From sequence record NC_010811.2: DNA of 64,000 nucleotides; one strand, given 5' to 3'. The notes beneath the pieces are model-generated. The model saw only the letters and a program-made list of their open reading frames with translations. It had not been told where the DNA came from and did no database searches. How positions within the stretch are numbered: position 1 is the stretch's first letter; each line of letters opens with the position of its first letter. The position numbers were made by a program, and so were the translations under genes. Shown here piece by piece: positions 10,200-62,606 of the stretch.

Positions 10200-10220
10200 G
10201 TTGAACCTCTAACGGTAGGA

Positions 10221-11339: not shown

Positions 11340-11347
11340 GTCTTAGC

Positions 11348-14370: not shown

Positions 14371-14377
14371 AGCTCGC

Positions 14378-14782
14378 CTACGGAATTAGGTTGAAGTTCA
14401 CCACCTGCCGATTCGATCGCAGATTCAAGGTAAAGGCAATCTGCACACGGTAGCCCGGCAGGCTGTAGTCTGGCAGGATGAACGTACTGCTTGTGTCGAT
14501 CGAGATGCGGGGTTCCCACGTCTGAATCGCCTGGATAGTCGACAGGTTCATCTTGTTGGCAGTCACATCGTCGATTGGTTCCTGTAGGAACTGAGTCCAC
14601 AGCGTACCGTACGTCGGGTTGAAGATTGGACCACGCGCACCAATCGGGCAGTTCAGAAGATTCGCCAGACTGTTGCGCACTGCGTATTCATCAGGCAGAA
14701 GATCGCCGCTACCGTCCAACGTGTAATACGTATTGGCGTCGATCCATACTGCCTGATCCCATTGTAGACCGGAGACTTGCAT
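14378..14782 (-). CDS. Baseplate wedge / sheath initiator (T4 gp25-like)
   Basis: VRNSLANLLNCPIGARGPIFNPTYG..AIQTWEPRI motif; start moved to ATG 14782, just after the spike gene stop. Confidence 0.8.
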   Translation of the reverse strand: MQVSGLQWDQAVWIDANTYYTLDGSGDLLPDEYAVRNSLANLLNCPIGARGPIFNPTYGTLWTQFLQEPIDDVTANKMNLSTIQAIQTWEPRISIDTSSTFILPDYSLPGYRVQIAFTLNLRSNRQVVNFNLIP

Positions 14783-14786
14783 ACGT

Positions 14787-15581
14787 TTAAGCCTGTTGAG
14801 GAGTGACCAAGGACGTACGAGTATCGCCACCCCCTTGAACGTTCGGCACATCGTGAACGTGGATGTCGTACAGGTGACGGAATTGACGTGCACTGAGTGT
14901 GTTACCGGTATCTGTGCTATCGGTCATATCACCGCCCGACGTCACAGTCTGGTCTGCGACGACCGGTCCGTGGAATTGATGAAGAGTGGCTGTGTACGTA
15001 GCGGTACCTCCTGCCTGGAAGTTGACGTTGCCGCTCGCTTGAATGCTGGCGTTGCCCGTCACGTTCACCTGCCAGTCACCATTGGAATTCGTTACGTCGC
15101 CGTTGACCGCGGTAATGCGCTTGCCATTGGCGTCGATATTGATGACTGCACCGCCCGCCGTCACGAACTTGTAAGTGTGCGCAGCCAGATCGTAGATGAC
15201 GATATTGCCGTCAGGGTCTTGGAATCCCCACACGTGAGCATTGGCAAACTGTGGAGGGACTGCAGGTGCCGTCAGCAGGTTGGTGTACAGCGGCTGATGT
15301 GGATCACCATCTTGCAGCTCCACCTTCACAGTGGATCCTGCTGGAGGCGTGCCGAACACTCCATACGGACCCTTAGCCCCAACACCAAATCCGAACGGAC
15401 TGTCCTTCAGCGGACCTACCCACGGCACTTCACCTGCGGACGCGTCAAACAGGCCGGGCACGTTGGCCTGAACGCGGCCCATGCCCGTTGTGTCTTGTTG
15501 ACCTGCGACAGTTCCCAAATAGTAGCCATCGCTGTAGTCTTCGCTTCCCTCGATCTGATCGTTGACTGTTTGGAAACTCAT
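14787..15581 (-). CDS. Baseplate central spike (gp5/gpV-like)
   Basis: OB-fold start YYLGTVAG..GRVQANVPGL, beta-helix repeats and C-terminal HVH metal-binding apex. Confidence 0.8.
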   Translation of the reverse strand: MSFQTVNDQIEGSEDYSDGYYLGTVAGQQDTTGMGRVQANVPGLFDASAGEVPWVGPLKDSPFGFGVGAKGPYGVFGTPPAGSTVKVELQDGDPHQPLYTNLLTAPAVPPQFANAHVWGFQDPDGNIVIYDLAAHTYKFVTAGGAVINIDANGKRITAVNGDVTNSNGDWQVNVTGNASIQASGNVNFQAGGTATYTATLHQFHGPVVADQTVTSGGDMTDSTDTGNTLSARQFRHLYDIHVHDVPNVQGGGDTRTSLVTPQQA

Positions 15582-15590
15582 AGCATCCTC

Positions 15591-16712
15591 TTACGCCGAC
15601 TTGTACTGCATGTTCGTGCCCTGACGCACGCCCAGGATCTTCTCACCAAACGACGCACCCTGAACGAACAGCGCCTGCGCGGCGATCGTGTACTCACCTG
15701 CGTATGCGGTGTCCGACTTCTGATTCTCTGCGTCCACCGCGAAGGTGAACTTGTCGAACAGATTGAAGGTGGTCGGAGTCAGCATCAGGAACTCGACCGC
15801 CGTGTTGTACAGTGCTGCGAACCGTTGATTCTGATAGCGTGCCTGCTCGTAGGCCGGATGCGTGTTGCCGATGTCCAGCCCACCGTACGAACGATAGCCC
15901 GACACGATCTTCTGACTGATCGTTTGATTGAGCATGGGGCTCGTCACGTCGGGCACATAGGTGAGCTGCGACCAACTGTCAGTAGCCTGCGGATTGACCA
16001 GCGACTGGCCGTAGCGCGTGTGCTGGTAGCCCTGCATCTTGTTGCTCATGCCGCTGGCTGCAACCGGCTGATAGTCCATCGCCACGTAGGAGCCCGGCAC
16101 GATCTGGCCCAGAGTCACCTGCAGCTTAGACTTCGGCAGCTGATTGACGTTGCGATAGCGCAGCACACCGTCCAGCCCCAAACCCGCGACCATGTAGGAC
16201 GTGTTGTTGACGTAACCGCGAGCCACCACCGCCTTGACGAACTCAGCATACGAGCGATTGCGAGGCGTCCACAGTTGACTGTCGGTTGTCGACACACCGT
16301 CGTACTTCAGACCACACGTCGCTGCGATCTGCTTCAGCACCTCGTCTGAGGTTCCGCGAATGCTTGTGGTACTGGTGCCCGCCCAGTACAGAGGACTGTC
16401 CCAGTAGCCGTCAACATCATAGACGAAGCACTCACCGTTGAACGACTTCTTGTGATTAAATTTCCGAAAGCTGTACGTGCGCTGATCACCACCCAACGCA
16501 CGCAGGGTGATGGTCAGCGGGATGCCATCCTGCAGATTGAACGCGTCCATCGCGTGACGCGCATCCCCAATGACGAAGCGGCAAGTGGGAACACGAGTGC
16601 GCGTTGAACAGCCAATGTGCAGCATGTGCAGGAAGTTCAAGGTGTCGAGCGGAAACTCCACACCATCGATGAGGATCGTTACTTCCAACCGATCGGCTAC
16701 TGTGTATCCCAT
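15591..16712 (-). CDS. Baseplate hub protein (gp27/gpD-like)
   Basis: 373 aa directly upstream of the spike gene; SDEVLKQIAATCGL hub-like pattern. Confidence 0.6.
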   Translation of the reverse strand: MGYTVADRLEVTILIDGVEFPLDTLNFLHMLHIGCSTRTRVPTCRFVIGDARHAMDAFNLQDGIPLTITLRALGGDQRTYSFRKFNHKKSFNGECFVYDVDGYWDSPLYWAGTSTTSIRGTSDEVLKQIAATCGLKYDGVSTTDSQLWTPRNRSYAEFVKAVVARGYVNNTSYMVAGLGLDGVLRYRNVNQLPKSKLQVTLGQIVPGSYVAMDYQPVAASGMSNKMQGYQHTRYGQSLVNPQATDSWSQLTYVPDVTSPMLNQTISQKIVSGYRSYGGLDIGNTHPAYEQARYQNQRFAALYNTAVEFLMLTPTTFNLFDKFTFAVDAENQKSDTAYAGEYTIAAQALFVQGASFGEKILGVRQGTNMQYKSA

Positions 16713-35774: not shown

Positions 35775-36749
35775 TCAGTGATTCCAGGTGAAGCGCTTCA
35801 GCGTTTTGATTTGGTCATTAGTGACGAACTCGGGAATACCCAAGGTCGCACGCAGATACCCATGGACGTCTACCTGACGAGAGATGTACGCCACGTGTTG
35901 AATGAGTTCGCCTTCAAGGTTGGGCATGACGGTGCCCAACACATCGTCGATCGAGTCGCCATACTGTTCGTGCAGTGCCTCGATCGACGGATCCATCTGC
36001 GTACGCGCCAGCGCCGCCACTTCAGCACGCGCCGACTTGAACCAACTGAGGATGAAAGTGGTGAGCACGCCCTGTCGCGCATTGCAGCGATCGATGGCCT
36101 TAGACACGGTCATAAGATAGATCTGCACCACGTCGTCCAATCGCACGCTGTGCTTGATGTCGCGATACATGAGTCGTGCATGATTCAGCGCCAGTCGCGT
36201 GTACTTCTGGATGATCAGCTCTTTGAACCAACAAGCCTTATCAGTCCAGTGGCGGACTTGCTGAATGACCGCGTACAGGCTGGCGCCGGTACGCAACCCA
36301 AGCTGACGCTCAATCTGGTAGATACGAGACTGGCGAACGATTGGGTCCATGTCCGAGATTTTGTGCAGCGATTCGTATTCTTGTACCTGACTGAGAAACA
36401 GGGAGAGGAATCCGAACAGCAGGCCGCGATTAAGCGACATTGCACGTGCGTGCGTGTTGGCACGCTTTGGGACGGGGTCGGTCACGAGATTGAAGAGGTG
36501 CACAGGCAGTCGCTGCCGGTCATCCGAGGTGAATTTTGTGCTGGCCTTCAGCGTCTGCGCACCGACTACTTGCGCCACATAGTTGTGGAACAGGTGCGGC
36601 AGCTCCGCATGAATAGGATCCAGCGCAGACCACAGGAACAGGTCAAGGGTCTGGAGATACTGCAGACTGGTCAGATTGTCGACGATCTTCTCTTCGGTGG
36701 CCTTCAATTTCTCGAAAGCAACAGAATGTGTGTAACCGGAGGCTGCCAT
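35775..36749 (-). CDS. Phage-encoded sigma70-family RNA polymerase sigma factor
   Basis: Region 2-like KYTRLAL..DDVVQIYLMTVSKAIDRCNARQGVLTTFILSWF; region 3-like PSIEAL. Confidence 0.65.
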   Translation of the reverse strand: MAASGYTHSVAFEKLKATEEKIVDNLTSLQYLQTLDLFLWSALDPIHAELPHLFHNYVAQVVGAQTLKASTKFTSDDRQRLPVHLFNLVTDPVPKRANTHARAMSLNRGLLFGFLSLFLSQVQEYESLHKISDMDPIVRQSRIYQIERQLGLRTGASLYAVIQQVRHWTDKACWFKELIIQKYTRLALNHARLMYRDIKHSVRLDDVVQIYLMTVSKAIDRCNARQGVLTTFILSWFKSARAEVAALARTQMDPSIEALHEQYGDSIDDVLGTVMPNLEGELIQHVAYISRQVDVHGYLRATLGIPEFVTNDQIKTLKRFTWNH

Positions 36750-37843: not shown

Positions 37844-38374
37844 CTAATGTGCGTTGGGGTTATGCTGCGTGTGGTACGCAACGATTCCATTGGACCGCCA
37901 CATCTCGACGACATCCAAGGTGTCGTCAAACGCCATGAAGATTTGCTTCGGGTCTAGCCCCAGCCGCATAACGCGATCCCACTTGTATTCGCGGTCAGGC
38001 ACACGATTGGGCTCTATGTAGTCCTTCGTGCGCATCAGCAACTGATGGTCGTGGATGTCGGCGCCCACCCACTGACGCAACTGGTCCAGCGTTTGCTGAC
38101 GATATCGCTTGTCGTCACGGCGCGACGTGATGAACAGCAGGTGGAACTGCGGATCGAAGTAGAAGGCACGGTACACGAAGACGCCCTGCGGAATGGGCAG
38201 GTCTTCGTGCACCCGGCTGAAGTACTTATCGTACTCGCCGCTGAAGTAATACTTGGCACGGCTGCTCGAGTCAACGAGGCAGCCGTCGATGTCGCAGATC
38301 ACATACTTCTTGTCACTGAACACCGGAATCTCCAGTTGATCAGCGAACTCGATGCTTGAGGTAAGGAAAGACAT
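37844..38374 (-). CDS. HAD-family phosphatase (polynucleotide kinase-phosphatase C-terminal-like)
   Basis: Motif I CDIDGCL, motif II ITSR, motif IV AFDD. Confidence 0.8.
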   Translation of the reverse strand: MSFLTSSIEFADQLEIPVFSDKKYVICDIDGCLVDSSSRAKYYFSGEYDKYFSRVHEDLPIPQGVFVYRAFYFDPQFHLLFITSRRDDKRYRQQTLDQLRQWVGADIHDHQLLMRTKDYIEPNRVPDREYKWDRVMRLGLDPKQIFMAFDDTLDVVEMWRSNGIVAYHTQHNPNAH

Positions 38375-38401
38375 GCGGAACCTCTTAGGGTAGTTGTTGA
38401 A

Positions 38402-39100
38402 TCAGTCTTGGCCCATGCCCATTTGCACGGCCTTCATGCGCAGCTCCAGGAGCTTGGCGATCTCTGCGCGCTTGGCCGCACGCTTTTCCAGCAGCAAGGC
38501 GAAGTAGAAGATGGCGTCGCGCAGCGTTTCGTCCAGGCTCTCTGTGGAGTCCGGGTCTTCGTCCACGTTGAACACGTCGTACTTGCGCAGCTCGCACTGA
38601 GCTTCGAGCCGGTCGATCTTGCGCCAGATGGTGAAGAACGCGCCCGGTCCCAGACGGCGGCACCAGCTTGCGCCATACTCGCTGTCCTTCTTGATGCCAA
38701 CGGCCACCAACTGATCAAAGATTTCGCGGATGGACTCGAAGTTCGTGTGCGGGATATCGCGGTCGTTGAAGTTGAGCGACGCGATAGCCACACGACGAGA
38801 TTCGTCCTTCACCATGGCAAGCACTTCGGACGCAGGCATGATGTAGGGCTTGTCGGACGGCGCTTCCATCTTTCCGAGGACTTCACGCGCCGACGGGCTG
38901 GCCGCATTCAGCTCTTTGATCGTAGGCTGCGGATTGATGTTGAACGTGCCGTGCGCGCAATCGGCGGTGGGCGTCTTGGTGACCGGGTTGTCCGTCCAAC
39001 CGGGCGTGTACGGGGTGGTGTCTTTCTTGTCCATAAGCGTTGGGCTCGTCTCGTTGGGTTTGTGGCCGTTGGGCGTTAGGAAGTACGCGTCGTGGTCCAT
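38402..39100 (-). CDS. Nucleotide-modification-associated (DUF1599/Nmad1-like) all-alpha NTP pyrophosphatase-fold protein
   Basis: KKDSEYGASW..RKIDRL..ESLDETLRDAIFY motif; directly downstream of the hydroxymethylase. Confidence 0.65.
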   Translation of the reverse strand: MDHDAYFLTPNGHKPNETSPTLMDKKDTTPYTPGWTDNPVTKTPTADCAHGTFNINPQPTIKELNAASPSAREVLGKMEAPSDKPYIMPASEVLAMVKDESRRVAIASLNFNDRDIPHTNFESIREIFDQLVAVGIKKDSEYGASWCRRLGPGAFFTIWRKIDRLEAQCELRKYDVFNVDEDPDSTESLDETLRDAIFYFALLLEKRAAKRAEIAKLLELRMKAVQMGMGQD

Positions 39101-39103
39101 GGC

Positions 39104-40222
39104 TTAGAGAACTTGCGGAGGAACCGGCAGCTTGGCCTTCTCCGCCAGCTTTGCAGCACGACGATACAGCCAGTTCTTGCCAGCGAACAGCCAGTCGTTG
39201 CTGGTGTCGATCTCGTGGATGAACTCGTTGTCTTCGGTAGTCAGCACTTCCAGCGCTTCGTCGATCTTGCCTTCCTTGTACAGGTTGTAGGCATGGGCCA
39301 TGGGCGCAGCCACATAGCGGATGAACGGCACCTGATAGTGCTCCAGCGCCACTTGGCGATAGTTGTCCACCAGATGCGCGACTTCTTCGTCGAAGAGCGG
39401 ATCGTCCGACCCCATTTCCATCGGCGCTGCATTGCGCGACGCATACACGTCCGGTCCCTTGCGCAGCACAGGTTGCACACCATACGTGGTGTCCACGATG
39501 AAGCGCTTGGTGATGTCGAACTCCAGATACACGTGCAGATTGTTCGACACTTGGTAGTAGTGGCCGAGTGGCAGGCCACATTTCTCGGCGACGTATTCGT
39601 GCAGCATCGAGAAGTGCACGACGTTGGCGCCGTAGCAGCCCCAGATCATGTCGTTGCTGCGGTTGGTGACCGTCATGTTGAGCTTGCCCAACTGCGCGTC
39701 GAACATCACGCTCGTGTTGCACGGCAGGTCCTTCGACCCTTGGTTCAGCAGGTCGGATTCGCGCCGCACTGCCCACGAGTCCTCGCGGCTATAGAATTCT
39801 CGGCTAGCGTCCCACATCTGCAGAACGCAGCGGCGGCTTGCCGGGTTCTTCTTCAGCTCGTCGATGATGGCGTTCAGCTGATCGTAGCCGAAGTGCTGGC
39901 GCCAGCGGAAGCCGTAGGCACCATTCAGCGTGCTGCCGTCATCGGTGTATTCCAGCATCTGCTTGGCGTAGTACGACGCGAACTCCACGTCGTTGCGCCC
40001 GGCCAGCATCCACAAGGCTTCCATCAGGTGCAGGAACGGATTGGCATCACGCACTGCGTCGAACGACACGCGCTGGCGCGGATGCGTGTACACCGAAGTG
40101 ACCGGCGTTGGGAAGCGAATGACCGGACCGTTGCGGCTGTCCGTCTTCAGGCCAACGGTGCAGATGGTTTCCAGACCCGAGTACAGGCCCTGATCGGGAT
40201 TGACGACGTGTAGGACTTTCAT
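39104..40222 (-). CDS. Thymidylate-synthase-family dUMP hydroxymethylase
   Basis: SRNG, RDANPF, AYG.RWR, NPASRR, catalytic DLPCN, NRSNDMIWGCYGANVVHFS, SNNLHVY; Asn at the substrate-specificity position; start at ATG 40222. Confidence 0.8.
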   Translation of the reverse strand: MKVLHVVNPDQGLYSGLETICTVGLKTDSRNGPVIRFPTPVTSVYTHPRQRVSFDAVRDANPFLHLMEALWMLAGRNDVEFASYYAKQMLEYTDDGSTLNGAYGFRWRQHFGYDQLNAIIDELKKNPASRRCVLQMWDASREFYSREDSWAVRRESDLLNQGSKDLPCNTSVMFDAQLGKLNMTVTNRSNDMIWGCYGANVVHFSMLHEYVAEKCGLPLGHYYQVSNNLHVYLEFDITKRFIVDTTYGVQPVLRKGPDVYASRNAAPMEMGSDDPLFDEEVAHLVDNYRQVALEHYQVPFIRYVAAPMAHAYNLYKEGKIDEALEVLTTEDNEFIHEIDTSNDWLFAGKNWLYRRAAKLAEKAKLPVPPQVL

Positions 40223-40257
40223 GGTTTGGGTTGTTTGGTTGCGTTGTACACTAGGCT

Positions 40258-40265
40258 TATTTACT
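40258..40265 (-). promoter_or_regulatory. AGTAAATA motif upstream of the dUMP hydroxymethylase
   Basis: 35 nt upstream of the ATG, in a short intergenic gap. Confidence 0.5.
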
Positions 40266-41274
40266 AGCCGCCGTTGTAACGATTCTTCATCCGGCTGGTG
40301 TCGCCATCCAGAATAGACCGCACCATCTTGCTCGTCTCGCAATGGCAATTGCTGTAGTTGGGCATGGAAATGGTGGCAAAGCCGGTCCACGGGTCTTCAG
40401 TCCAATACTTAGCGGGCACTTTGGCCTTGACCGCAGCGTTCACCAGATCACGCGTGCGGATCATCGGCTCATTCAACTTGTCGCCCTTGTACACCGCCTG
40501 CATGTGGCCATTCAGCAGCCAGTTCATGCCCTTGGTGGTGCCGGGACCAGGACTGGTGAACGTGTTGAGGTCAGGGGCGCGGCCCAACCACTTCTTGCTG
40601 TAGGACAGATCGACCAGCACTTGATTGGACATGAACGCGCCCCAGCCATGGAACGACGTGAGCGCCGCCAGACTGTCCACCATCGTAGTTTTGAAGACGT
40701 GTCGCACTTCCTTGCGTCGTTCCCAAAGCGGAGCCAGCCCAACAAATGGGATGTACTCGGCCTTCGAGCCTTCGCGCTTCGGATAGCGTGGCGGGAACAC
40801 CGAGTTGACGATGTATGCGCCGGTGATCAGCTTGTTGCCAGCTTCCTTGTAGCGAACGAGCGACTGGTAGACACGTTCTGTGTTCCAGGTTTTCACAGGC
40901 CACACGCCGTCGTCCATCAGCCGCTGCAGCGTTGGAGGCCAGTTGATGAGACGTGCCGCGCACAGCATGAACCACAGATCCGGATGGTCTTCGTACGGCT
41001 TGACGATATTGTCCACGATCCACGTGGTGCCGGGGTCCAGCTCACGATAGATGTTGGTGAACTTGGAAGCGCGCAGTACCGGGTCCGTGGTCCATGGCTT
41101 GGGCAAACCCTTCTGCCGCTTCAGGAAGATCTTGTGGCGCTCGATGATGAAGTCGGCCATGGCGTCCACGCGCTCTTCTTCCGTGCGAAGAACGCGCGGA
41201 TCGAACAAGAACTTGGCAGGCGCCTCTTCCGCCGACGCAAACAACTGCCCTTGACGCGCATCACGCTTTGCCAT
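40264..41274 (-). CDS. 5-hmdU DNA kinase family protein (aGPT-Pplase clade 1 helical domain)
   Basis: FIIERHKIF..WTTDPVL..KFTNIYRELDPGT, RLINW and SPGPGTTKG motifs; adjacent to the hydroxymethylase; start at ATG 41274. Confidence 0.75.
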   Translation of the reverse strand: MAKRDARQGQLFASAEEAPAKFLFDPRVLRTEEERVDAMADFIIERHKIFLKRQKGLPKPWTTDPVLRASKFTNIYRELDPGTTWIVDNIVKPYEDHPDLWFMLCAARLINWPPTLQRLMDDGVWPVKTWNTERVYQSLVRYKEAGNKLITGAYIVNSVFPPRYPKREGSKAEYIPFVGLAPLWERRKEVRHVFKTTMVDSLAALTSFHGWGAFMSNQVLVDLSYSKKWLGRAPDLNTFTSPGPGTTKGMNWLLNGHMQAVYKGDKLNEPMIRTRDLVNAAVKAKVPAKYWTEDPWTGFATISMPNYSNCHCETSKMVRSILDGDTSRMKNRYNGG

Positions 41275-42088
41275 TCTGCTTCTCCAGTTGACGTTCAGCG
41301 GCCTCGGCACGATGGCGCCAGTACATGCACTGCTGACCGAGAGTGAAATTCCGCGGGTCCAGTTCCGCATTGTAGTGCGACAGTCCGGCGGCGCCAATGG
41401 CCATCGCATCTACGATATCTGCGTGCACGGTAAGTGCGGGCAGCACGCCTTCCATCTTGTAGCCGAACAGGTGGAAGTCGCGTTGGTAGATGTGATTCAC
41501 AAGCTGAAGCGTGTTGCGCGACAGATCGTCCATCGTAAGGCGGCGCCCGGTGTCGTACTTGGTCTGGTCCTTCGAGTGGCCCAGCCCTTCGAGCGAAGCA
41601 TCAAGGCCCAGTCGCTGACGAACATACGCCCAATCCGCCGCCAGATTCTCGTAGCGGCCGATGTAGGACGCGAACAGCTCGTTGTTCTTGTAGAAGAAGT
41701 AGTGCTGCGGACAGAAGTGGGTGTAGCGCCAGTCGAAACGCACGTTGGACGGGGTGAGATTGCGCGCAGCCCACTCGTTGAAGTCGGTGTCCGGGTCCAG
41801 CGCATGCTGGCGCTTGTGCTCGGCCCAAGCGCTGAACAGACGGTCGTAGGGGTTGCGCACAAACCCGAACTTGAAGAAGTTGCGGAACGTACGCTCAGGC
41901 CACACCGCCGGAATGTCGCCAACGCACACGTGGAACAGTTCAACCACACGCTCCAGCGCAGGCACGTATTCCTGATACGCGAGGCGATGGGGGTTGTCGT
42001 CGTATGCGAACAGCTGACGACGAATGCTGGTCCCTGCGACCTTCGGGTTGTGCAGGAACATGAAGCCGCGTTGGTTATTGATAATCAT
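41261..42088 (-). CDS. PAPS-dependent sulfotransferase (Sulfotransfer_2 type)
   Basis: 5'-PSB motif HNPKVAGTS, 3'-PB motif FVRNPYDRLFSAW, HFCPQ, IGRYENLAADW. Confidence 0.85.
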   Translation of the reverse strand: MIINNQRGFMFLHNPKVAGTSIRRQLFAYDDNPHRLAYQEYVPALERVVELFHVCVGDIPAVWPERTFRNFFKFGFVRNPYDRLFSAWAEHKRQHALDPDTDFNEWAARNLTPSNVRFDWRYTHFCPQHYFFYKNNELFASYIGRYENLAADWAYVRQRLGLDASLEGLGHSKDQTKYDTGRRLTMDDLSRNTLQLVNHIYQRDFHLFGYKMEGVLPALTVHADIVDAMAIGAAGLSHYNAELDPRNFTLGQQCMYWRHRAEAAERQLEKQNGKA

Positions 42089-42983
42089 TGAGCAGGTCTC
42101 GGAGGTATTGTTTGTCACGACCTTGGAACGCGAGCTCTGCGGTCAGCAGCTTGCGGCCCTTGGCCTTGAACAGTTCGTAACGGGGAGCGTCAAGGAACAG
42201 GCTGGGCGCGCTCATAAAGTCCACGCGCAGGAACGATGCGACGTGCTGCGCCTGCTTGCCTCGACGGATGAGTCCAGGGAACATCACCATCTGGCGCAGG
42301 AACGAATCCCACACCTGCTTTACTTTACGTTCGCGCCCGGCACCCGACTTGTCGGCAGGGTCGAACGTGGTGTTCCACAGCAGACCGTAGTCCACGACCG
42401 ACGTATGGCCATTGCAAAGCACTGCCAGATTGTGGACGGTGTCAATGCCCCACAGGTCACGCGTAGCGCCGCGGTCAATCACATTGAGCAGCACATCTAC
42501 GTCGTAGCCTGCAACGTTCGTGCACTTGTGATTGATGCGCTGGGCACCCCATCGCGCCATCACGTTCTTGTGCATGAAGTAGGGACCGGCGCCCACTAGC
42601 GAATTGCCAGCCGCGAACAGACGGGGCGCAGTCTTGAGGAACCAGCGATCAGCAGCCGTGCGGTCCTTGGTGGCACCAACGAACGACCCATCTTTCTGGC
42701 GACCGTAGAACAGCAGGTCGTCCTCAATCACCATCGCCCAGCGTCCGCCCTGCTTCTGATGATGTGCGTACACACCATATCGCTTGTTGGGCAGCAGCGT
42801 GTCGTTTGGCGTGGGAAGGAAGTCCACGTGCTTGGCGTAGGGCTGACGCTTGTGTTCACGCAGCTCGTCCTTCGGACACACAACAGTCACGTGCTGCAGG
42901 ACAGCGGGCGATAGGTAGGACAGCGTCTTCTGCCGTCCCAGTCGCCCCTTGGTCAGCAGGTAGATGTGATATCGCTTATCCAT
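42075..42983 (-). CDS. GT-A fold glycosyltransferase (TET-associated/GREB1-like), copy 1
   Basis: IYLLTKGR, VVCPKDE, VIEDDL (DxD-like motif). Confidence 0.65.
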   Translation of the reverse strand: MDKRYHIYLLTKGRLGRQKTLSYLSPAVLQHVTVVCPKDELREHKRQPYAKHVDFLPTPNDTLLPNKRYGVYAHHQKQGGRWAMVIEDDLLFYGRQKDGSFVGATKDRTAADRWFLKTAPRLFAAGNSLVGAGPYFMHKNVMARWGAQRINHKCTNVAGYDVDVLLNVIDRGATRDLWGIDTVHNLAVLCNGHTSVVDYGLLWNTTFDPADKSGAGRERKVKQVWDSFLRQMVMFPGLIRRGKQAQHVASFLRVDFMSAPSLFLDAPRYELFKAKGRKLLTAELAFQGRDKQYLRDLLNDYQ

Positions 42984-43750
42984 TACACGAGTCCGCCGAT
43001 CTTAGCGGCGCCCCTCCAGCTAATCCGAGTGTTGGAATCCGGATGTTGGGCTGAAGGCGGCTTCTCCTTGACTACATCCGGGTGTAGCTTGATCAGCTTC
43101 TGCAGCGCCTTCGCCGCCATCTCGCGAGTGCGTTCACCTTGCAAGCCTCCAGCGGCGTCTGCCTTACGCTGGCCGACAGCCATGTCGTAGGTCACTGCTA
43201 TGCGAACACCGGCCTTCAGCAGTTGAAGCGTGTAGTCCACATCCTCGTAGGGGAAGATGCGATTCCACTTGATGGTCTTAACCGCCTTCTTGTCCATACC
43301 GAAGACGAAGCCCAGATGGAAATTCTCCTTGATACCGCCTTTGGGTGCGAACGCCTTGGTGCCGAAACCAACGCAGCGATAGTCACAGCACAGCTTGGGC
43401 AGCGTCTTGGTCCAGAAGCGGTAGGTGGCGTCGCGTGCGGTGCTGGCCACGACATGCTTCTGCTGTTCTGGGTCGAACGCATACAGATACAGGTCGTCGT
43501 CCATCATGAAGGTGAAGCGATGCGGCGACTGCAGCATGATCCACTCGCGCTTGGCGCCCAACGTCTTGATGTTGTTGGGCTGTGCCAGCACGTTGACTCG
43601 CGGATAGTTCTTGCGCAGGGCTTTCACCTCGTCCGCGGGACACACTAGGGTCACGTGCTGATGCATGCCCTTTGGCAACCGCTCCACCGTCAACTGATTG
43701 TCGACCCGGCCGCGTGTTGGTATGTACAGATGATAGTCGATCTTAGACAT
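42983..43750 (-). CDS. GT-A fold glycosyltransferase (TET-associated/GREB1-like), copy 2
   Basis: LYIPTRGR, LGAKREWI, MMDDDL, YEDVDYTLQLL, GGLQ motifs. Confidence 0.75.
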   Translation of the reverse strand: MSKIDYHLYIPTRGRVDNQLTVERLPKGMHQHVTLVCPADEVKALRKNYPRVNVLAQPNNIKTLGAKREWIMLQSPHRFTFMMDDDLYLYAFDPEQQKHVVASTARDATYRFWTKTLPKLCCDYRCVGFGTKAFAPKGGIKENFHLGFVFGMDKKAVKTIKWNRIFPYEDVDYTLQLLKAGVRIAVTYDMAVGQRKADAAGGLQGERTREMAAKALQKLIKLHPDVVKEKPPSAQHPDSNTRISWRGAAKIGGLV

Positions 43751-44465
43751 GATCGGTCTTCAGATAGGCTTCCAGTTCTTCGGGAGTGCCAAGGCAATGG
43801 AACGAGTCACGCGGCACCGGCACATTCAGCACAAGATTGTTGGTCACAATCAAGTGGTTGAGCAAGTCGCTCATGTAGATTTCTTTGGCGATCGACTTGC
43901 GAAGCAGATGGCTTGCGGCCTCTGCCGCCGCGTATCCAGAAGAGAACCAGTAGACGCCGCATCCGCTGTACGTGGGAGTCGGTGCCGTGATGGTCCGTTC
44001 GTGGATATGCGTGACGAAGTAGCCATCGGTGTGCACTGCGCTGAAGTGGCGTGCAGGCTCTTCGTTCAGGAACGTGAGCATTGCGGCGGTGGCCTTGGAT
44101 TCAGCCGCAGGACGCAGGTACGCCAGAAGATCGATCTTGGCAAACGAATCACAGTCCAAGAACAGGACGGGCGCTGCCAGATCAATAGTCGGCATCTTCA
44201 CCAGAGCGTGCAACGCCGAATGCGCAGGGCCGCGCAGCGTTTGGCACGTGCTGAGGAAGCGCAGGCCGGAAGTTCCACGCGGCAGATGACGAACAGCTTC
44301 ACCGCTGAAGATGAAGTTCACGTCCTCGGTCTTCAGTCCGTATTCGGCCAGCACATGCTCGTACATTGGGACGCCGTGTACCGGGATCATTGGCTTGGCT
44401 TGACGGTAGCCAGCAGCCGTGAAGCGGGAACCAAGTCCCGCAGCCAACATGATGATTTGGGTCAT
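43743..44465 (-). CDS. Sugar-phosphate nucleotidyltransferase (BcbG-like)
   Basis: MLAAGLGSRF..KPMI, LRGPAHS, LDCD, GVYWFSSG, LGTPEEL; start at ATG 44465. Confidence 0.8.
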   Translation of the reverse strand: MTQIIMLAAGLGSRFTAAGYRQAKPMIPVHGVPMYEHVLAEYGLKTEDVNFIFSGEAVRHLPRGTSGLRFLSTCQTLRGPAHSALHALVKMPTIDLAAPVLFLDCDSFAKIDLLAYLRPAAESKATAAMLTFLNEEPARHFSAVHTDGYFVTHIHERTITAPTPTYSGCGVYWFSSGYAAAEAASHLLRKSIAKEIYMSDLLNHLIVTNNLVLNVPVPRDSFHCLGTPEELEAYLKTDHV

Positions 44466-44467
44466 TT

Positions 44468-45901
44468 CTATTGGATCTGGTTCAGAACTTTGCGGGCCAG
44501 TTCGACGAATCGCAACTGGCGCTGTTTGTCGTCGCTGTGGAGCGGAAGCATGCTGATGAACAACAGTCCCGTCACCGCCCACAACTCGTTGGACGAAATG
44601 CCGAAGCGCTGAGCGCCGTAACGCAAGATGGGGTCTGCCAAACCCTCCCATTCAGTGGGCAGTGGCTGCTTTGCGACTGCGTGGTCGTAGCCGATCACGG
44701 AGTGCAGAAGCTTTGCCAGCTCATAGCGAACGTCGCCATACAGCGAGGGGCGGTCCTTAGCGTCCAGCCCCCGTGGATCGAACACCAAGACACGATCCGT
44801 ACGCTGGTCCAACATGATGTTGGAGAAGCACAGGTCACCATGCATGATGGTTCGATGGTGTACCTTTGGATTCACGTTCATCGCGAACAACTGAGCCATG
44901 CCATGAAGGTCGGCCAACGGCAGATGTACGTTGCCCTCCTCTAACAGATCCAGGCGGCCCCACGTCTTCGTGACCGCAAGCTGATAGAAGTCGTTGACAT
45001 GCGCCCCCTGACACGCTTGATGCGCGTCTTCCACCCAGCACAGCGTCTGATGAAGAACGTGGGTCCACGCACGGTCGTCCAACTTGCCATACACATAGAG
45101 CTCAGCCAGCGTTGGCAGCGGCAGATACTCCATGGTGTACTCGCCGTCGTCATAGTGGACGATGCGCGGCACGTAGGTGGACAGCTTGCGTGGCAAACCC
45201 AGGAACCACTCGCGCTCTGCGTTCACCTTCTTCGTGTTGGCGCTGCGCTTGGTCAGCAGGTGGCCATCGTTGGTCAACCCGTTGAAGTGACGAGTGGTGC
45301 GGGACAGGAACTCGCGCTTGGAACTGAAGTACGTAGACAGATGCCCAAAGTCCAGCCAGTGCTCGTCGATCGAAACGTTGGGAAGGCATCCCGCCATGTG
45401 ACGCACAGCCGATTTCACCGTCTCGTAACTGTCGAGCGTGAACGTCAGCTCACTCAGGCGACACGCAAAGTACCCGGCGAACACGCTGTCCTTGTCCAGG
45501 AACTGCCAGTGGGCAGACGTACCCAAGGGATGAGAAACTACGCCCACCGACGGTTCTTTCAACCACTTGGTGACCAGCGTATCGCCCCACAGAACATGCA
45601 CACAGACGTCCGGCGCGTTCTCTTGAGCACCGATCAGGCGCAGCGCGCGACGCAACTGATAGGGCAGCGACTGATCTTCCGCCGACGGGAAGAAGTAGAC
45701 GTTGCCTCCCACGTATGGAACAGACGACATCTCGGGCCACGTCACGTAGATGTGGTGGAAGTTGTCGCCTGCTGCGTCCAACTGCAGGTCGAGCAGCGTG
45801 CGCCCGCCCACCGGCACACGGGCTGCAGGAATGGCCCCGAACAGGAACTGAAGCTCCTGATTGCATGGAGCCGATGACATGATGAGCAGGACGTTGCGCA
45901 T
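44468..45901 (-). CDS. Nucleotidyltransferase-like / sugar kinase (APH/choline-kinase fold) fusion, BcbE-like
   Basis: N-terminal LLIMSS..ELQFLFGAIP, WLDFGHLSTY; kinase motifs HGDLCFSN, FDPRG and GDVRYELAKL. Confidence 0.75.
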   Translation of the reverse strand: MRNVLLIMSSAPCNQELQFLFGAIPAARVPVGGRTLLDLQLDAAGDNFHHIYVTWPEMSSVPYVGGNVYFFPSAEDQSLPYQLRRALRLIGAQENAPDVCVHVLWGDTLVTKWLKEPSVGVVSHPLGTSAHWQFLDKDSVFAGYFACRLSELTFTLDSYETVKSAVRHMAGCLPNVSIDEHWLDFGHLSTYFSSKREFLSRTTRHFNGLTNDGHLLTKRSANTKKVNAEREWFLGLPRKLSTYVPRIVHYDDGEYTMEYLPLPTLAELYVYGKLDDRAWTHVLHQTLCWVEDAHQACQGAHVNDFYQLAVTKTWGRLDLLEEGNVHLPLADLHGMAQLFAMNVNPKVHHRTIMHGDLCFSNIMLDQRTDRVLVFDPRGLDAKDRPSLYGDVRYELAKLLHSVIGYDHAVAKQPLPTEWEGLADPILRYGAQRFGISSNELWAVTGLLFISMLPLHSDDKQRQLRFVELARKVLNQIQ

Positions 45902-46801
45902 TTACTTTGCCTTCTTCTGTTTCTGACTACTGGCGAATGCCTTCTCCCAGTAGACGATCACTTCCTTGCGGTTGATGGACCCCTTGTACTCCTTGTCCAC
46001 CACCTTGACGAACGGGTCGTGGATGGACGCCAGCTTGACCGCGGCACGGTCTGATCCCTTTACCGTACGCTCTTCGCTACAGCCGCCGTCCGAGCCGTAG
46101 TCGAGTGGATTCACAACGAAGTTGGTGAGGATCAGATTGGGGTAGCCCAGTCGCAGCAGGTGCAGCGTCACGTTGAAGTCCTCGCGGAATTTCACTTCGT
46201 CGAATCGGATGCCGTGCTTGAGCAGTGTGCGCCGATTGTGGCCGATTGCGTGCATGGCGCGTCCCACCATCTTGAAGTCGCCGCGCACATAGTTGTTCAT
46301 CAGGCGGCTGGCGATGCACGTGTGGACTACGCCCTTGTTCACCATCTGATCCTTGATGAAGTCCCAGCGACGCATCTTCTGCACGTCAGGGAACGGCTCC
46401 TTGAACAGGAAGGTGATGCCCTTGGCCTTTGCCGCGTCCGTCTGCACCCACTTGCCGCTCTTGGCACCCTGCCATTCGCGGTGCTCTTTGTTGCAGCGGC
46501 GGAAGAAGTACATGTCGTCGTCCAACTGGAAGACGTTGTCGGCGCGAACGTTCTCGATGATCCACTGGCGCTTCTTTGCGATACAGTCGACCGTGGGATC
46601 GTCCACCGCCCACACCAGCTCGTGCTTGTGCTTCTTGCGCAGGGCCTTCGCTTCATCCCAATCGCTGGCCAGCAACAGCGTTCGCTCGCGCAGTTCGGCA
46701 GGCAGCTCACGCAGCGTAACCTGACGATCGACGCGCCGATGCGTTGGGATAACCACTTGGAAGTCTTTGTCCGCCACCGGCGGGCGTCGATGTTGTGCCA
46801 T
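45902..46801 (-). CDS. GT-A fold glycosyltransferase (TET-associated/GREB1-like), copy 3
   Basis: VVIPTHRR, IAKKRQWI, QLDDDM, FREDFNVTLHLL, GGCS; start at ATG 46801. Confidence 0.75.
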   Translation of the reverse strand: MAQHRRPPVADKDFQVVIPTHRRVDRQVTLRELPAELRERTLLLASDWDEAKALRKKHKHELVWAVDDPTVDCIAKKRQWIIENVRADNVFQLDDDMYFFRRCNKEHREWQGAKSGKWVQTDAAKAKGITFLFKEPFPDVQKMRRWDFIKDQMVNKGVVHTCIASRLMNNYVRGDFKMVGRAMHAIGHNRRTLLKHGIRFDEVKFREDFNVTLHLLRLGYPNLILTNFVVNPLDYGSDGGCSEERTVKGSDRAAVKLASIHDPFVKVVDKEYKGSINRKEVIVYWEKAFASSQKQKKAK

Positions 46802-46802
46802 G

Positions 46803-47498
46803 TCAGTAGGTGAGTGTGAAGATGGAACGACCGTCGGCATCGGTAGTGAACGCCGAGTAGCCACGGACCAAAACGTTAAACTTGGTCACGTTATGCTCGA
46901 TGGTGGTGCCCGGCGTCATGTGCCCGCGCAGATCGAAGTGATCGACCAGCACTTCGTTCATGGTGCCAGCTTCGATGATACGCCACATATTGGTCAGGCC
47001 ATCGCTGTGCGTGTTGTAGCGGATGTAGTACGACTGATGGCCAGCCGTCACCTGATTGACGATGTCCTGCGCCACACGCTCGAAGTCTTCGGGCGTTTGC
47101 AGATATTCGTCCACCGAGTACTGGAAGGCACCAACACCCGGCTTCTGGTAGAGCTTGTTGGTGTCCGCGAATCGGCCTTCCTGGATGGTGTTCATCCACA
47201 CACTGAACACGTCGCTCACTTCCTTGAACTGGGTGAAGAATGCGCCGCGTGTTGTGCGCGTCGGACACACGAAGTCCACGATCACCCACGAGCCCTGCTC
47301 CATGACACAGCGTGCCAGTCGGCCCAGCGTCTTGGCCTGGATCACACGATCCTTCTCTTCGAACGACAAATGCGTCGTGATGTTGGCGCGCGCCCAGTCC
47401 GCGTTGAAGTGAATGGCGCTCAGACGCTTCTGAATGGCGAGGGCCAGCGTGGTCTTGCCACTGCCGGGCAAGCCTTGAATCATGATGGTCTTGGACAT
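46803..47498 (-). CDS. Adenylylsulfate (APS) kinase-like P-loop kinase with extra C-terminal domain
   Basis: IQGLPGSGKTTLA, FNADWAR, DR..Q, VDFVCP, RFADTNKLYQKP resemble CysC-like kinases; true substrate not established. Confidence 0.6.
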   Translation of the reverse strand: MSKTIMIQGLPGSGKTTLALAIQKRLSAIHFNADWARANITTHLSFEEKDRVIQAKTLGRLARCVMEQGSWVIVDFVCPTRTTRGAFFTQFKEVSDVFSVWMNTIQEGRFADTNKLYQKPGVGAFQYSVDEYLQTPEDFERVAQDIVNQVTAGHQSYYIRYNTHSDGLTNMWRIIEAGTMNEVLVDHFDLRGHMTPGTTIEHNVTKFNVLVRGYSAFTTDADGRSIFTLTY

Positions 47499-62300: not shown

Positions 62301-62376
62301 TGGAGCGGGCGACGAGACTCGAACTCGCGACATCTTGCTTGGAAGGCAAGAACTCTACCAACTGAGCTACGCCCGC
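62301..62376 (-). tRNA. trnG: tRNA-Gly (anticodon UCC)
   Basis: Full 76-nt cloverleaf: GCGGGCG stem, anticodon loop CTTCCAA, TTCGAGT T-loop, encoded CCA. Confidence 0.95.
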
Positions 62377-62389
62377 AGAAACTGAAACA

Positions 62390-62459
62390 ACTCCCTTAGT
62401 GGGTTCGAACCACTGCCTGCCCCCGTCGGGACCGCTCTACCACTCTAAGCTAAAGGGAA
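62390..62459 (-). ncRNA. tRNA-like element with the anticodon loop reduced to a 4-nt loop and no encoded CCA
   Basis: Intact acceptor (TTCCCTT/AAGGGAG), D-arm (GCTT-AGAGTGGTA-GAGC) and T-arm (AGTGG-TTCGAAC-CCACT); anticodon arm GTCCC-GACG-GGGGC. Confidence 0.65.
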
Positions 62460-62528
62460 TTGAGTTTGCTCACCAGCATGGAGAAGGTGCGCACAGTGCA
62501 CCCCCTTGGTCCATACACGGCTTGCAGA

Positions 62529-62606
62529 TGGTCCGAGTGAGAGGATTCGAACCTCCGACCCCCTGATCCCAAATCAGGTGCGCTAACCAGACTGCGCTAC
62601 ACTCGG
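62529..62606 (-). tRNA. trnP: tRNA-Pro (anticodon UGG)
   Basis: Full 78-nt cloverleaf: CCGAGTG/CACTCGG stem, anticodon loop TTTGGGA, encoded CCA. Confidence 0.95.

Follow-up and report, generated by a model that had tools for sequence, protein, structure and literature searches.

A putative operon for glycosylation and sulfation of 5-hydroxymethyluracil in the DNA of Ralstonia phage phiRSL1

An eleven-gene run in the replication module

We analysed a window of 64,000 nucleotides from the record of the Ralstonia jumbo phage phiRSL1 (AB366653.2 / NC_010811.2, 231,255 bp, genus Mieseafarmvirus) and in it a 9.7-kb run of eleven minus-strand genes, which we believe is probably a thymidine hypermodification operon, predicted to combine the O-glycosyl (base-J-like) branch of this chemistry with a sulfation module. 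Positions are given in window coordinates, which equal the record coordinate minus 124000; the region 37844-47498 corresponds to phiRSL1 161844-171498 with 100% identity. The eleven open reading frames (ORFs) are, in transcription order, GenBank ORF238 down to ORF228, and, going by the GenBank coordinates, adjacent genes share 1-85 nt or have 0-27 nt between them. A promoter and terminator scan of the region, whose signal was at chance level, placed no terminator-like site on the minus strand within the run. The operon is located in the replication module, with a RecA-like gene on one side and the primase and DNA polymerase I (PolA) genes on the other. GenBank names five of the eleven products, each singly: deoxyuridylate hydroxymethyltransferase, sulfotransferase-like, nucleotidyl transferase, NDP-sugar pyrophosphorylase-like (NDP, nucleoside diphosphate) and adenosine 5'-phosphosulfate (APS) kinase. 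An earlier note on this DNA, made from the letters alone, had described eleven tightly packed genes here, all of which exist, and had labelled them as an APS-kinase-like protein, three glycosyltransferases, a sugar kinase fusion, a nucleotidyltransferase, a sulfotransferase, a member of the 5-hydroxymethyldeoxyuridine (5-hmdU) DNA kinase family, a dUMP hydroxymethylase, an Nmad1-like protein and a HAD protein. The family matches reported below bear out these labels for ORF238, ORF237, ORF235, ORF234, ORF233, ORF232, ORF230 and ORF228; ORF236, ORF231 and ORF229 are taken up in their places.

Synthesis of the hydroxymethylated nucleotide

ORF230 (39104..40222) is a thymidylate synthase (TS) homologue and a predicted dUMP hydroxymethylase, matching Pfam Thymidylat_synt (PF00303) at 2.7e-22, with 79.6 bits against a cut-off of 24.3, and phrog_5131 at 1e-139. 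Its start is more likely the MKVLH at 40222 than the GenBank start at 40348. The PCN of ORF230 aligns to the PCH of TS, so the equivalent of the catalytic Cys146 is present, and the best PDB match is the CMP hydroxymethylase MilA (1e-15), ahead of the classical thymidylate synthases. Published specificity rules for the TS family, which for hydroxymethylation are correlative, assign Asn at position 177 to enzymes acting on uracil and Asp to dCMP/CMP enzymes, and use Asp169 and position 143 for the type of reaction (PMC13326640). In ORF230 the residue equivalent to Asn177 is Asn (the N of GANVVHF on the N of PFNIASY in the alignment to 6auj), where MilA has Asp; Asp169 is retained (RSND), where 5-hydroxy-dCMP synthases have Asn; and position 143 is Asp as in MilA, where methylating enzymes have Leu. 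Identities as a 5-hydroxy-dCMP synthase or a dCMP hydroxymethylase were rejected on residues 177 and 169. ORF230 is 45% identical (tblastn) to the enzyme of M6-type phages, which make 5-hmdU. A tblastn search of phiRSL1 gave no paralogue of ORF230, the annotation lists no further TS and no ThyX, and a phage dCMP deaminase encoded elsewhere in the genome (ORF113) can supply dUMP. Since the specificity residues, the MilA match, the 45% identity to the M6-type enzyme and the lack of another TS all point the same way, the predicted role of ORF230 as a dUMP-specific hydroxymethylase making 5-hydroxymethyl-dUMP (hmdUMP) appears well supported.

Glycosyltransferases and sugar-nucleotide genes

Three genes of the run encode putative glycosyltransferases of the TAGT family (PF20691), which has been defined as a family of DNA hydroxymethyl-pyrimidine glycosyltransferases (PMC4111573). 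ORF234 (42983..43750) is the most canonical, matching Pfam TAGT over its full length (3.5e-55, 187.5 bits against a cut-off of 27.5); ORF237 (45902..46840), a GT-A glycosyltransferase, matches at 1e-11 (45.7 bits); and the divergent ORF233 (42075..42983), with 26.2 bits, falls just below the cut-off and is identified by its match to phrog_842 (6e-44) and its paralogy to ORF234 (tblastn 4.6e-11). All three are members of phrog_842 ('beta-glucosyl-HMC-alpha-glucosyltransferase'), ORF237 at 1.6e-63. DDD or EDD motifs are visible in the TAGT sequences, the DxD-like motif of ORF237 being QLDDDMYF. Judging from family and context, we infer that the phiRSL1 TAGTs would act on a hydroxymethyl-pyrimidine in DNA.

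The sugar donor could be made by three further genes. ORF235 (43743..44465, 240 aa) is a sugar-1-phosphate nucleotidyltransferase homologue with the canonical LAAGLGSRF...KP motif, matching Pfam NTP_transf_3 (4.7e-11) and NTP_transferase (9e-8) and, all below cut-off, NCBIfam models of GlmU, RmlA and MurU-type enzymes. ORF236 (44468..45901), which had been called a sugar kinase fusion, has two domains. The kinase half of that label holds, with an APH-fold C-terminal domain (Pfam APH 5.8e-5, residues 224-400), and the label is reasonable as a whole; the N-terminal domain, nucleotidyltransferase-like with a degenerate signature, is not recognised by profiles. Members of the ORF236 family have SSAxCNxE / IPA there in place of GxGxR...K, residues 1-200 gave no Pfam match, and a profile-profile comparison of this domain with ORF235 was not significant. 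The kinase domain (residues 203-422) is 26% identical to gp083 of Acinetobacter phage Maestro (BLASTP, E 3e-11), both sharing HGDxxFSNIMLD and DPRG, and the tblastn matches of ORF236 lie in Acinetobacter T4-like phages. PDB sequence searches with ORF234 and ORF236 returned nothing usable. Finally, ORF228 (37844..38374) is a HAD-superfamily phosphatase homologue of the PNKP-phosphatase type (Pfam HAD_PNKP 8.6e-12, 45.8 bits against a cut-off of 27.6) with a visible DxD motif, CDIDGC; HAD genes are also found in three related metagenomic loci (L008, L015, L032). In enzymes of the AfhE / RB69 gp52:53 / DLP3 gp82 class, of which Maestro gp083 is a member, a nucleotidyltransferase is fused to a sugar-phosphate 1-kinase and, together with a phosphatase whose role is analogous to that of ORF228, yields UDP-arabinofuranose for DNA arabinosylation (PMC13326640). 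By analogy, the kinase ORF236, the nucleotidyltransferase ORF235 and the phosphatase ORF228 plausibly follow the same three-step logic. Some relatives of the operon carry additional sugar genes, namely an epimerase/dehydratase (L008) and a UDP-galactopyranose mutase (L019, L021).

The sulfation module

ORF232 (41261..42118), whose start is probably the Met at residue 11, is a predicted sulfotransferase dependent on 3'-phosphoadenosine-5'-phosphosulfate (PAPS), matching Pfam Sulfotransfer_2 (PF03567) at 3.9e-21 (76.8 bits against a cut-off of 22) and phrog_3347 at 1.9e-70. Across 37 homologues positions K26/A28/G29 of the PAPS-binding segment PKVAGTS and R88/P90 of the segment RNPYDRLFS are invariant, and S96 is nearly so. 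PDB sequence searches with ORF232 gave nothing usable; its AlphaFold model (pLDDT 90) has top Foldseek matches that are all sulfotransferases, the best of the heparan-sulfate type, and all weak (E >=0.019). The closest cellular homologue examined, 40% identical, is from Pantoea ananatis and lies in an O-antigen locus, in the order ABC transporter, UDP-galactopyranose mutase (GLF), four glycosyltransferases, sulfotransferase, then gnd and his. This position hints at a sugar as the acceptor.

Among 50,697 deposited phage genomes, phiRSL1 is the only one with an ORF232 homologue; in metagenomes there are many. A sulfotransferase of this family occurs together with a homologue of ORF231, the HMUDK_hel protein described in the next section, in 15 distinct phage or metagenome clusters (RSL1, L008, L013, L014, L015, L018, L019, L021, L103, L104, L110, L113, L141, L164, L170), of which 13 also have a TS homologue on the stretch fetched. 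In every sulfotransferase cluster that we read gene by gene there is at least one glycosyltransferase candidate; the candidates are TAGTs, except in L113 and L017, where they are GT-B-like and about 400 aa long. In compact clusters the sulfotransferase, TAGT and APS kinase lie directly between HMUDK_hel and TS, and in L021 and L110 they lie immediately upstream of TS, a few genes after HMUDK_hel. Many metagenomic contigs that are unrelated to one another contain the same gene set, some with the order kept and some with it shuffled, and the grouping is beyond chance.

ORF238 (46803..47498, 231 aa with a C-terminal extension of about 90 aa) is an APS-kinase homologue by Pfam (APS_kinase 2.7e-15, 57.1 bits against a cut-off of 21.1), and its best 20 PDB sequence matches are APS kinases without exception. 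It retains a P-loop and DWAR, LSF and DRV for the APS-kinase motifs DxxR, DLGF and DRxEN. Of the 15 sulfotransferase clusters 14 have an APS-kinase homologue, the contig of the fifteenth (L018) ending at the sulfotransferase, and there is none in the 78 HMUDK_hel loci without a sulfotransferase that were collected in the survey below (Fisher 1e-15, phylogeny not corrected for). In L015 and its near-duplicate L016 the kinase adjoins a CysD (237 bits against the NCBIfam cut-off of 195) and a CysN-like GTPase, and our own CysD profile also matches L103, L104 and L170, giving four clusters with a CysD-like gene. A CysD and a CysN-like GTPase next to the kinase would mark a genuine sulfate-activation pathway. 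We assign ORF238 to the function of the sulfotransferase because of this strict co-occurrence, the adjacency to CysD and the absence from the 78 loci; it is predicted to make PAPS for that enzyme and to be neither a DNA kinase nor a dNMP kinase.

An alternative, which we regard as very unlikely, makes ORF238 a kinase of hmdUMP, or else a 5-hmdU DNA kinase that is non-orthologous and acts together with ORF231; the sulfotransferase would then draw on host PAPS or be irrelevant. The phage needs to phosphorylate hmdUMP and no kinase for this is annotated, phrog_761 ('thymidylate kinase') matches ORF238 over its full length at 1.3e-19, and both the Asn that replaces the first Asp of LDGD and the homologous kinases of phages lacking a sulfotransferase fit such a role. 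However, the top PDB and NCBIfam matches are all APS kinases, only the P-loop aligns to a true 5-hmdU DNA kinase (5-HMUDK), with no match to PF18748, and the gene tracks the sulfotransferase and is placed beside CysD as just described. Moreover, the NAD variant is common to all 14 phage orthologues of ORF238, including the kinases that adjoin CysD. The related idea that ORF238 and ORF231 together form a split 5-hmdU DNA kinase, to which ORF238 contributes the P-loop, was rejected: only Walker A aligns to the real kinase, there is no PF18748 match, and the gene follows the sulfotransferase and not HMUDK_hel.

Some APS-kinase-like proteins were seen in phages with no sulfotransferase. Xylella phage Bacata gp31 (L012:5001-5741) and RsoM2USA_248 (L011:5992-6423) are 35-42% identical to the N-terminus of ORF238. 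The Salvovirus kinase has, by eye, a C-terminal HxGH-like motif that suggests a nucleotidyltransferase, and adjoins a COG3236 / GTP cyclohydrolase II gene.

ORF231, ORF229 and the search for a DNA kinase

ORF231 (40264..41310) had been placed in the 5-hmdU DNA kinase family, an identity that we reject. Its sole Pfam match is HMUDK_hel (PF18723), covering the whole protein (2.2e-39, 136 bits against a cut-off of 25); it has no P-loop (Walker A) and no match to HMUDK_HMUD1 (PF18748), and it is thus the helical domain only. The domain owes its Pfam name to its fusion to the kinase in SP10, where it is the C-terminal domain of gp186 (PMC5889632). In phage PAC6 a 187-aa kinase matches HMUDK_HMUD1 and the adjoining 323-aa protein, to which ORF231 is 37% identical, matches HMUDK_hel; by gene order, the latter is the counterpart of M6 gp55. 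Likewise, the relatives of ORF231 in M6-like phages (37-39% identity) are a 324-aa protein encoded right after the true kinase. In M6 itself gp54 is the kinase and gp51 the clade-2 aGPT-Pplase transferase, and N-alpha-glycinylthymidine was reconstituted in vitro with gp55 omitted and with no loss of product (PMC8989533). When the PAC6 kinase, aGPT-Pplase2, pyridoxal-phosphate (PLP) enzyme, radical S-adenosylmethionine (radical-SAM) enzyme and Nmad5 were searched against the phiRSL1 genome by tblastn, none was found; the HMUDK_hel protein and the TS homologue are the only PAC6-type proteins that phiRSL1 shares.

ORF231 belongs to the all-helical, clade-1 aGPT-Pplase-like proteins of the M6 gp55 type. 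Near its C-terminus lies a C311-E312-x-x-K315 motif that is invariant in 42 diverse homologues. The Cys-Glu pair is reminiscent of the essential Cys/Glu of the clade-2 aGPT-Pplases, enzymes that displace the phosphate of 5-phosphomethyldeoxyuridine (5-PmdU) (PMC8989533; PMC11472151), and of Cys247 of PaMx11 gp46. The AlphaFold model (pLDDT 91.6) is all-helical, and its best Foldseek matches are helix-hairpin-helix DNA glycosylases and PaMx11 gp46 (8z2n), with template-modelling scores of 0.40-0.45, none of them significant (all E >=0.2). PDB sequence searches with ORF231 yielded nothing usable, and no significant similarity emerged when HMUDK_hel was compared, profile to profile, with one clade-2 aGPT-Pplase. 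We treat ORF231 as probably a DNA-binding, base-flipping and possibly catalytic partner of the other enzymes.

ORF229 (38402..39100) had been called Nmad1-like, a label that finds no support: no nucleotide-modification-associated domain profile matched it, nor did any other Pfam, PHROG or PDB profile, and among 23 aligned relatives 22 have no Pfam match and one weakly matches DUF3310. It is a conserved small helical protein that accompanies clusters for 5-hydroxymethyluracil (hmU), with homologues in 32 loci, in TAGT-type and kinase-type clusters alike and usually adjoining the TS homologue. The core motif of the family is SYGDSW..RGG.GAF..L.RK.DR...DLRRYL.

A survey of HMUDK_hel loci

Searching IMG/VR with an HMUDK_hel alignment gave at least 567 relatives, of which the best 80 were taken with 10-kb flanks and searched with locally built profiles. 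Among the 79 loci other than phiRSL1, a P-loop kinase is present in 33, accompanied by aGPT-Pplase2 in 24 of these, and a TAGT in 23, while TAGT and P-loop kinase are never found together (0/79, Fisher 1.8e-7). Neither kinase nor sulfotransferase occurs within 10 kb in 22 of the 23 TAGT loci, and TS is seen in 21 of these 22. All three such loci that we read gene by gene have HMUDK_hel, TAGT and TS in a tight block, directly adjacent in one. The compact block, usually with an ORF229-like gene, was noted at L098:9977-12621, L077:9989-13530, L069:9992-13429 and about 19 more IMG/VR loci, with no P-loop 5-HMUDK, aGPT-Pplase2 or sulfotransferase in the 10-kb flanks. Such loci predict base-J-like glycosyl-hmU DNA, and since 22 TAGT loci have neither kinase nor sulfotransferase, HMUDK_hel would work without an enzyme that installs a leaving group. 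Sulfation, in turn, looks like an add-on to glycosylation in one HMUDK_hel subclade. For phiRSL1, we take the entry route to be base-J-like O-glycosylation, and not the M6/ViI phospho-intermediate, because no P-loop 5-HMUDK or aGPT-Pplase2 was found in its genome by tblastn and because the TAGT and kinase clusters are disjoint in the 79 loci.

These loci bear directly on a different use of sulfate, in which it would be a transient leaving group. In place of a 5-hmdU DNA kinase, the sulfotransferase and APS kinase would give 5-sulfooxymethyl-dU in DNA, from which ORF231, through its Cys-Glu, would displace the sulfate with a nucleophile via the exocyclic methylene, leaving the packaged DNA free of sulfate and bearing sugars or another group. 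Such a scheme would give ORF231 a job; it is in keeping with a protein of an aGPT-Pplase-related family whose invariant Cys-Glu-x-x-Lys resembles the clade-2 Cys/Glu (PMC8989533; PMC11472151), and no P-loop 5-HMUDK was found in phiRSL1 or in any sulfotransferase-bearing cluster. On the other side, the 22 loci with HMUDK_hel and TAGT, and with no kinase or sulfotransferase within 10 kb, indicate that no activated leaving group is needed, L008 has two sulfotransferases (and a sugar epimerase/dehydratase), the closest cellular sulfotransferase homologue examined belongs to a carbohydrate locus, and tblastn found no aGPT-Pplase2, PLP or radical-SAM partner in phiRSL1. We therefore down-weighted sulfate as an obligatory leaving group for ORF231, on account of the 22 loci, and keep it as a rival that we hold to be distinctly unlikely. 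We prefer a sulfated sugar on hmU to a base that is itself sulfated, directly or transiently, because of the TAGT loci without sulfotransferase, the O-antigen homologue, the two sulfotransferases of L008 and the glycosyltransferase in each cluster read.

Two relatives show how the operon varies. The 178-kb contig L008 is syntenic with phiRSL1, and conservation within the operon is uneven: by tblastn the sulfotransferase, ORF234 and ORF237 are 63-71% identical (71% for ORF234 and 63% for ORF237), TS and APS kinase 48% and HMUDK_hel only 28%, while four flanking genes (ORF226, ORF224, ORF222 and ORF248) are 34-48% identical over near-full-length matches. The high identity of the module suggests strong constraint or recent exchange. 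The jumbo-phage relative L032 (IMGVR_UViG_3300017565_000017, 243 kb), whose HMUDK_hel is 48% identical to that of phiRSL1, has HMUDK_hel, TS, ORF229, two HAD genes and dUTPase_2 at 9881-16222, and has no TAGT or other glycosyltransferase, sulfotransferase or APS kinase within 10 kb. The glycan and sulfate module is therefore a variable insert, dispensable for the lineage.

In another explanation, the sugar and sulfate genes would serve a different target and merely sit beside an hmU module, modifying a host surface polysaccharide (for example in superinfection exclusion) or a virion protein. Clusters for polysaccharide modification are known in jumbo phages (PMC7824862); among the cellular sulfotransferase homologues examined, the nearest is an O-antigen gene; in L032 the hmU genes stand without the sugar and sulfate module; and L017 combines a sulfotransferase, APS kinase, glycosyltransferase and NTP-transferase in a replication module where neither HMUDK_hel nor TS was seen over 19 kb. 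We nevertheless consider this explanation unlikely. The glycosyltransferases belong to the TAGTs, a family linked to the modification of DNA bases; in 15 clusters the genes of the module are intermingled with HMUDK_hel and, in most cases, TS, and in L021 and L110 they stand directly upstream of TS; the cluster is within the DNA replication module; and no flippase, polymerase, lipid-carrier, signal peptide or membrane-protein family was noted among the Pfam and PHROG matches of the cluster. That DNA is the target is suggested by the family definition of TAGT, by the position in the replication module and by the sulfotransferase, TAGT and APS kinase lying between HMUDK_hel and TS.

A DUF4326 gene, absent from phiRSL1, lies between the sulfotransferase and HMUDK_hel in L013 (8244-8552) and L014 (6414-6719). 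A 39%-identical sulfotransferase with ORF229-like and HAD genes was also seen in the jumbo-sized contig L108 (Ga0302304_10000013, 230 kb) around 10001-10642; TAGT, HMUDK_hel, TS and APS kinase are all absent from the 10 kb around it.

A proposed pathway and what weighs against it

As the most probable explanation we propose a pathway of five steps. Hydroxymethyl-dUTP would enter phage DNA in place of some or all dTTP; ORF236, ORF235 and ORF228 would make one or more NDP-sugars; and the three TAGTs would attach a chain of one to three sugars to the 5-CH2OH of hmU in DNA, with ORF231 probably binding the DNA and flipping or activating hmU. ORF238 would then turn APS made by the host into PAPS, and ORF232 would place a sulfate ester on the DNA-linked sugar. 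We lean towards the view, with slightly less confidence than in this pathway, that phiRSL1 and at least 14 uncultured phages package 5-(glycosyloxymethyl)uracil for thymine, its sugar sulfate-esterified through a phage-encoded PAPS pathway that comprises an APS kinase and, in some relatives, CysD with a CysN-like GTPase. HMUDK_hel plus glycosyltransferase, with or without a sulfotransferase, would then constitute a third branch of hmU hypermodification beside the kinase/aGPT-Pplase branch. A bulky, strongly anionic base would probably serve to protect the DNA from restriction and other nucleases. As for the earlier proposal of 5-hmU with a self-made sugar and sulfate, its core is the reading that the neighbourhood survey supports best, whereas its entry through an M6/ViI-type kinase falls away.

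Several observations weigh against this proposal. The phiRSL1 genome was sequenced and deposited without any mention of modification. ORF238 remains below the cut-off of NCBIfam apsK (TIGR00455; 4e-14, 52.6 bits against 138.7) and reads FNAD for LDGD (xNADxxR for LDGDxxR, with Asn for the first Asp), and related kinases are found in phages with no sulfotransferase, namely RsoM2USA and the Salvovirus phages. The acceptor of ORF232 is not readable from its sequence or from its weak Foldseek matches. A scheme of pure O-glycosylation leaves ORF231 and its invariant Cys-Glu unaccounted for, the co-occurrence statistics ignore shared ancestry, and the gene contents of L032 and L017 separate the hmU genes from the sugar and sulfate genes.

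Other features of the phiRSL1 genome

In the genes flanking the operon (ORF222-226 and ORF240-249) Pfam gave nothing except a weak sigma-70 region 2 match in ORF224 (35775-36749, 324 aa). Counterparts of ORF224 are found in L008 (39% identical) and in L032 (14358-15329), where the gene lies a few genes downstream of the cluster and has the same weak match. Near the end of the window, tRNA-Gly and tRNA-Pro are annotated on the minus strand at about 62301-62606 (record 186301-186606). Outside the window, phiRSL1 encodes a homospermidine synthase (ORF110, L003:8761-10203) and a glutathionylspermidine-synthase-like protein (ORF052, L002:24276-25397). It is pure speculation that phage-made polyamines could offset the added negative charge of sulfated DNA in packaging.

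Implications

The hypermodifications known from phage DNA attach sugars, phosphorylated sugars, amino acids or polyamines. In the literature that we searched, which includes 2026 reviews and does not extend to Iyer et al. 2013, there is no sulfate ester on a natural DNA base modification. Nor did we find, with Pyle et al. 2024 likewise outside the search, a paper linking RSL1 or any phage sulfotransferase to DNA hypermodification, and the literature searched held no measurement of the DNA composition of phiRSL1. If our proposal is true, phiRSL1 and its relatives would provide the first natural DNA modification with a sulfate known to us, and phages would be running their own PAPS supply for nucleic-acid chemistry. 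A sulfated glycan on each modified thymine would add roughly one negative charge per modified base, with consequences for DNA packaging, evasion of nucleases and CRISPR, sequencing chemistry and polymerase tolerance, and with its DNA glycosyltransferases and DNA-glycan sulfotransferase the operon would offer new means of labelling DNA. Furthermore, the survey separates a large and apparently undescribed class of clusters (HMUDK_hel, TAGT and TS) from the kinase/aGPT-Pplase class, which gives the enigmatic gp55-type protein a testable context, and L032 provides a natural 'module-less' comparator. phiRSL1 is cultivable and in use for biocontrol of a crop pathogen, and the prediction is therefore directly testable by nucleoside mass spectrometry.

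Comparison with known systems

The nearest known systems are the thymidine hypermodifications of M6, ViI, PaMx11, SP10 and PhiW-14, which use 5-HMUDK and aGPT-Pplase (PMC5889632, PMC8989533, PMC11472151). Like M6 and ViI, phiRSL1 would start from 5-hmdU, the product of a dUMP hydroxymethylase of the TS family that is 45% identical to the M6-like enzyme, has a gp55-type HMUDK_hel / clade-1 aGPT-Pplase protein (37% identity), and is predicted to modify the 5-hydroxymethyl group after replication. In contrast to them, tblastn found in it no P-loop 5-hmdU DNA kinase, clade-2 aGPT-Pplase, PLP or radical-SAM enzyme, and therefore no 5-PmdU intermediate and no transfer of an amino acid are predicted; TAGT glycosyltransferases, NDP-sugar synthesis and the sulfation module are there instead.

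Base J, the beta-D-glucosyl-hydroxymethyluracil of kinetoplastids, resembles the predicted product, in which likewise the hydroxymethyl group of hmU in DNA bears an O-linked sugar, and the same Pfam family (TAGT, PF20691) is involved. TAGT-type DNA glycosyltransferases are also found in phage TET/5mYOX clusters (PMC4111573; PMC13229309). In contrast to base J, the hmU of phiRSL1 would come from a nucleotide-level hydroxymethylase and not from a JBP/TET dioxygenase acting on DNA, and the phage has three paralogous transferases, a sugar donor of its own making and sulfation.

The pathway to arabinosylated 5-hydroxycytosine in RB69, DLP3, HY126 and Maestro (PMC13326640) shares with the proposed one a TS homologue giving a hydroxylated pyrimidine nucleotide, a two-domain AfhE-type enzyme that with a phosphatase makes an NDP-sugar, and several glycosyltransferases that place a mono- to trisaccharide on DNA. 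The differences are that the phiRSL1 base is predicted to be uracil-derived (Asn177, Asp169) and not 5-hydroxycytosine, that its glycosyltransferases are GT-A TAGTs and not GT-B enzymes, that the N-terminal domain of ORF236 lacks the nucleotidyltransferase signature while a separate nucleotidyltransferase, ORF235, is present, and that phiRSL1 has a sulfotransferase and an APS kinase. An arabinose-5-phosphate isomerase is not annotated in phiRSL1, and none turned up in the family searches.

With the glucosyl- and gentiobiosyl-hydroxymethylcytosine of T-even phages, phiRSL1 would have in common a sugar chain on a hydroxymethyl-pyrimidine and glycosyltransferases of phrog_842, but on a different base, with a phage-made sugar donor and an added sulfate. 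Lastly, the sulfation genes have their likeness in bacterial metabolism: ORF238 is a homologue of CysC in the bacterial sulfate-activation system (CysD/CysN, CysC), to which relatives of the phage add CysD and, in L015, a CysN-like GTPase, and ORF232, at 40% identity to the sulfotransferase of the Pantoea O-antigen locus, resembles carbohydrate sulfotransferases of the O-antigen and Nod-factor type. Unlike bacterial sulfate activation, the module of phiRSL1 lies inside a putative phage DNA-modification operon, and its kinase has the NAD-for-DGD variant and an extra C-terminal domain.

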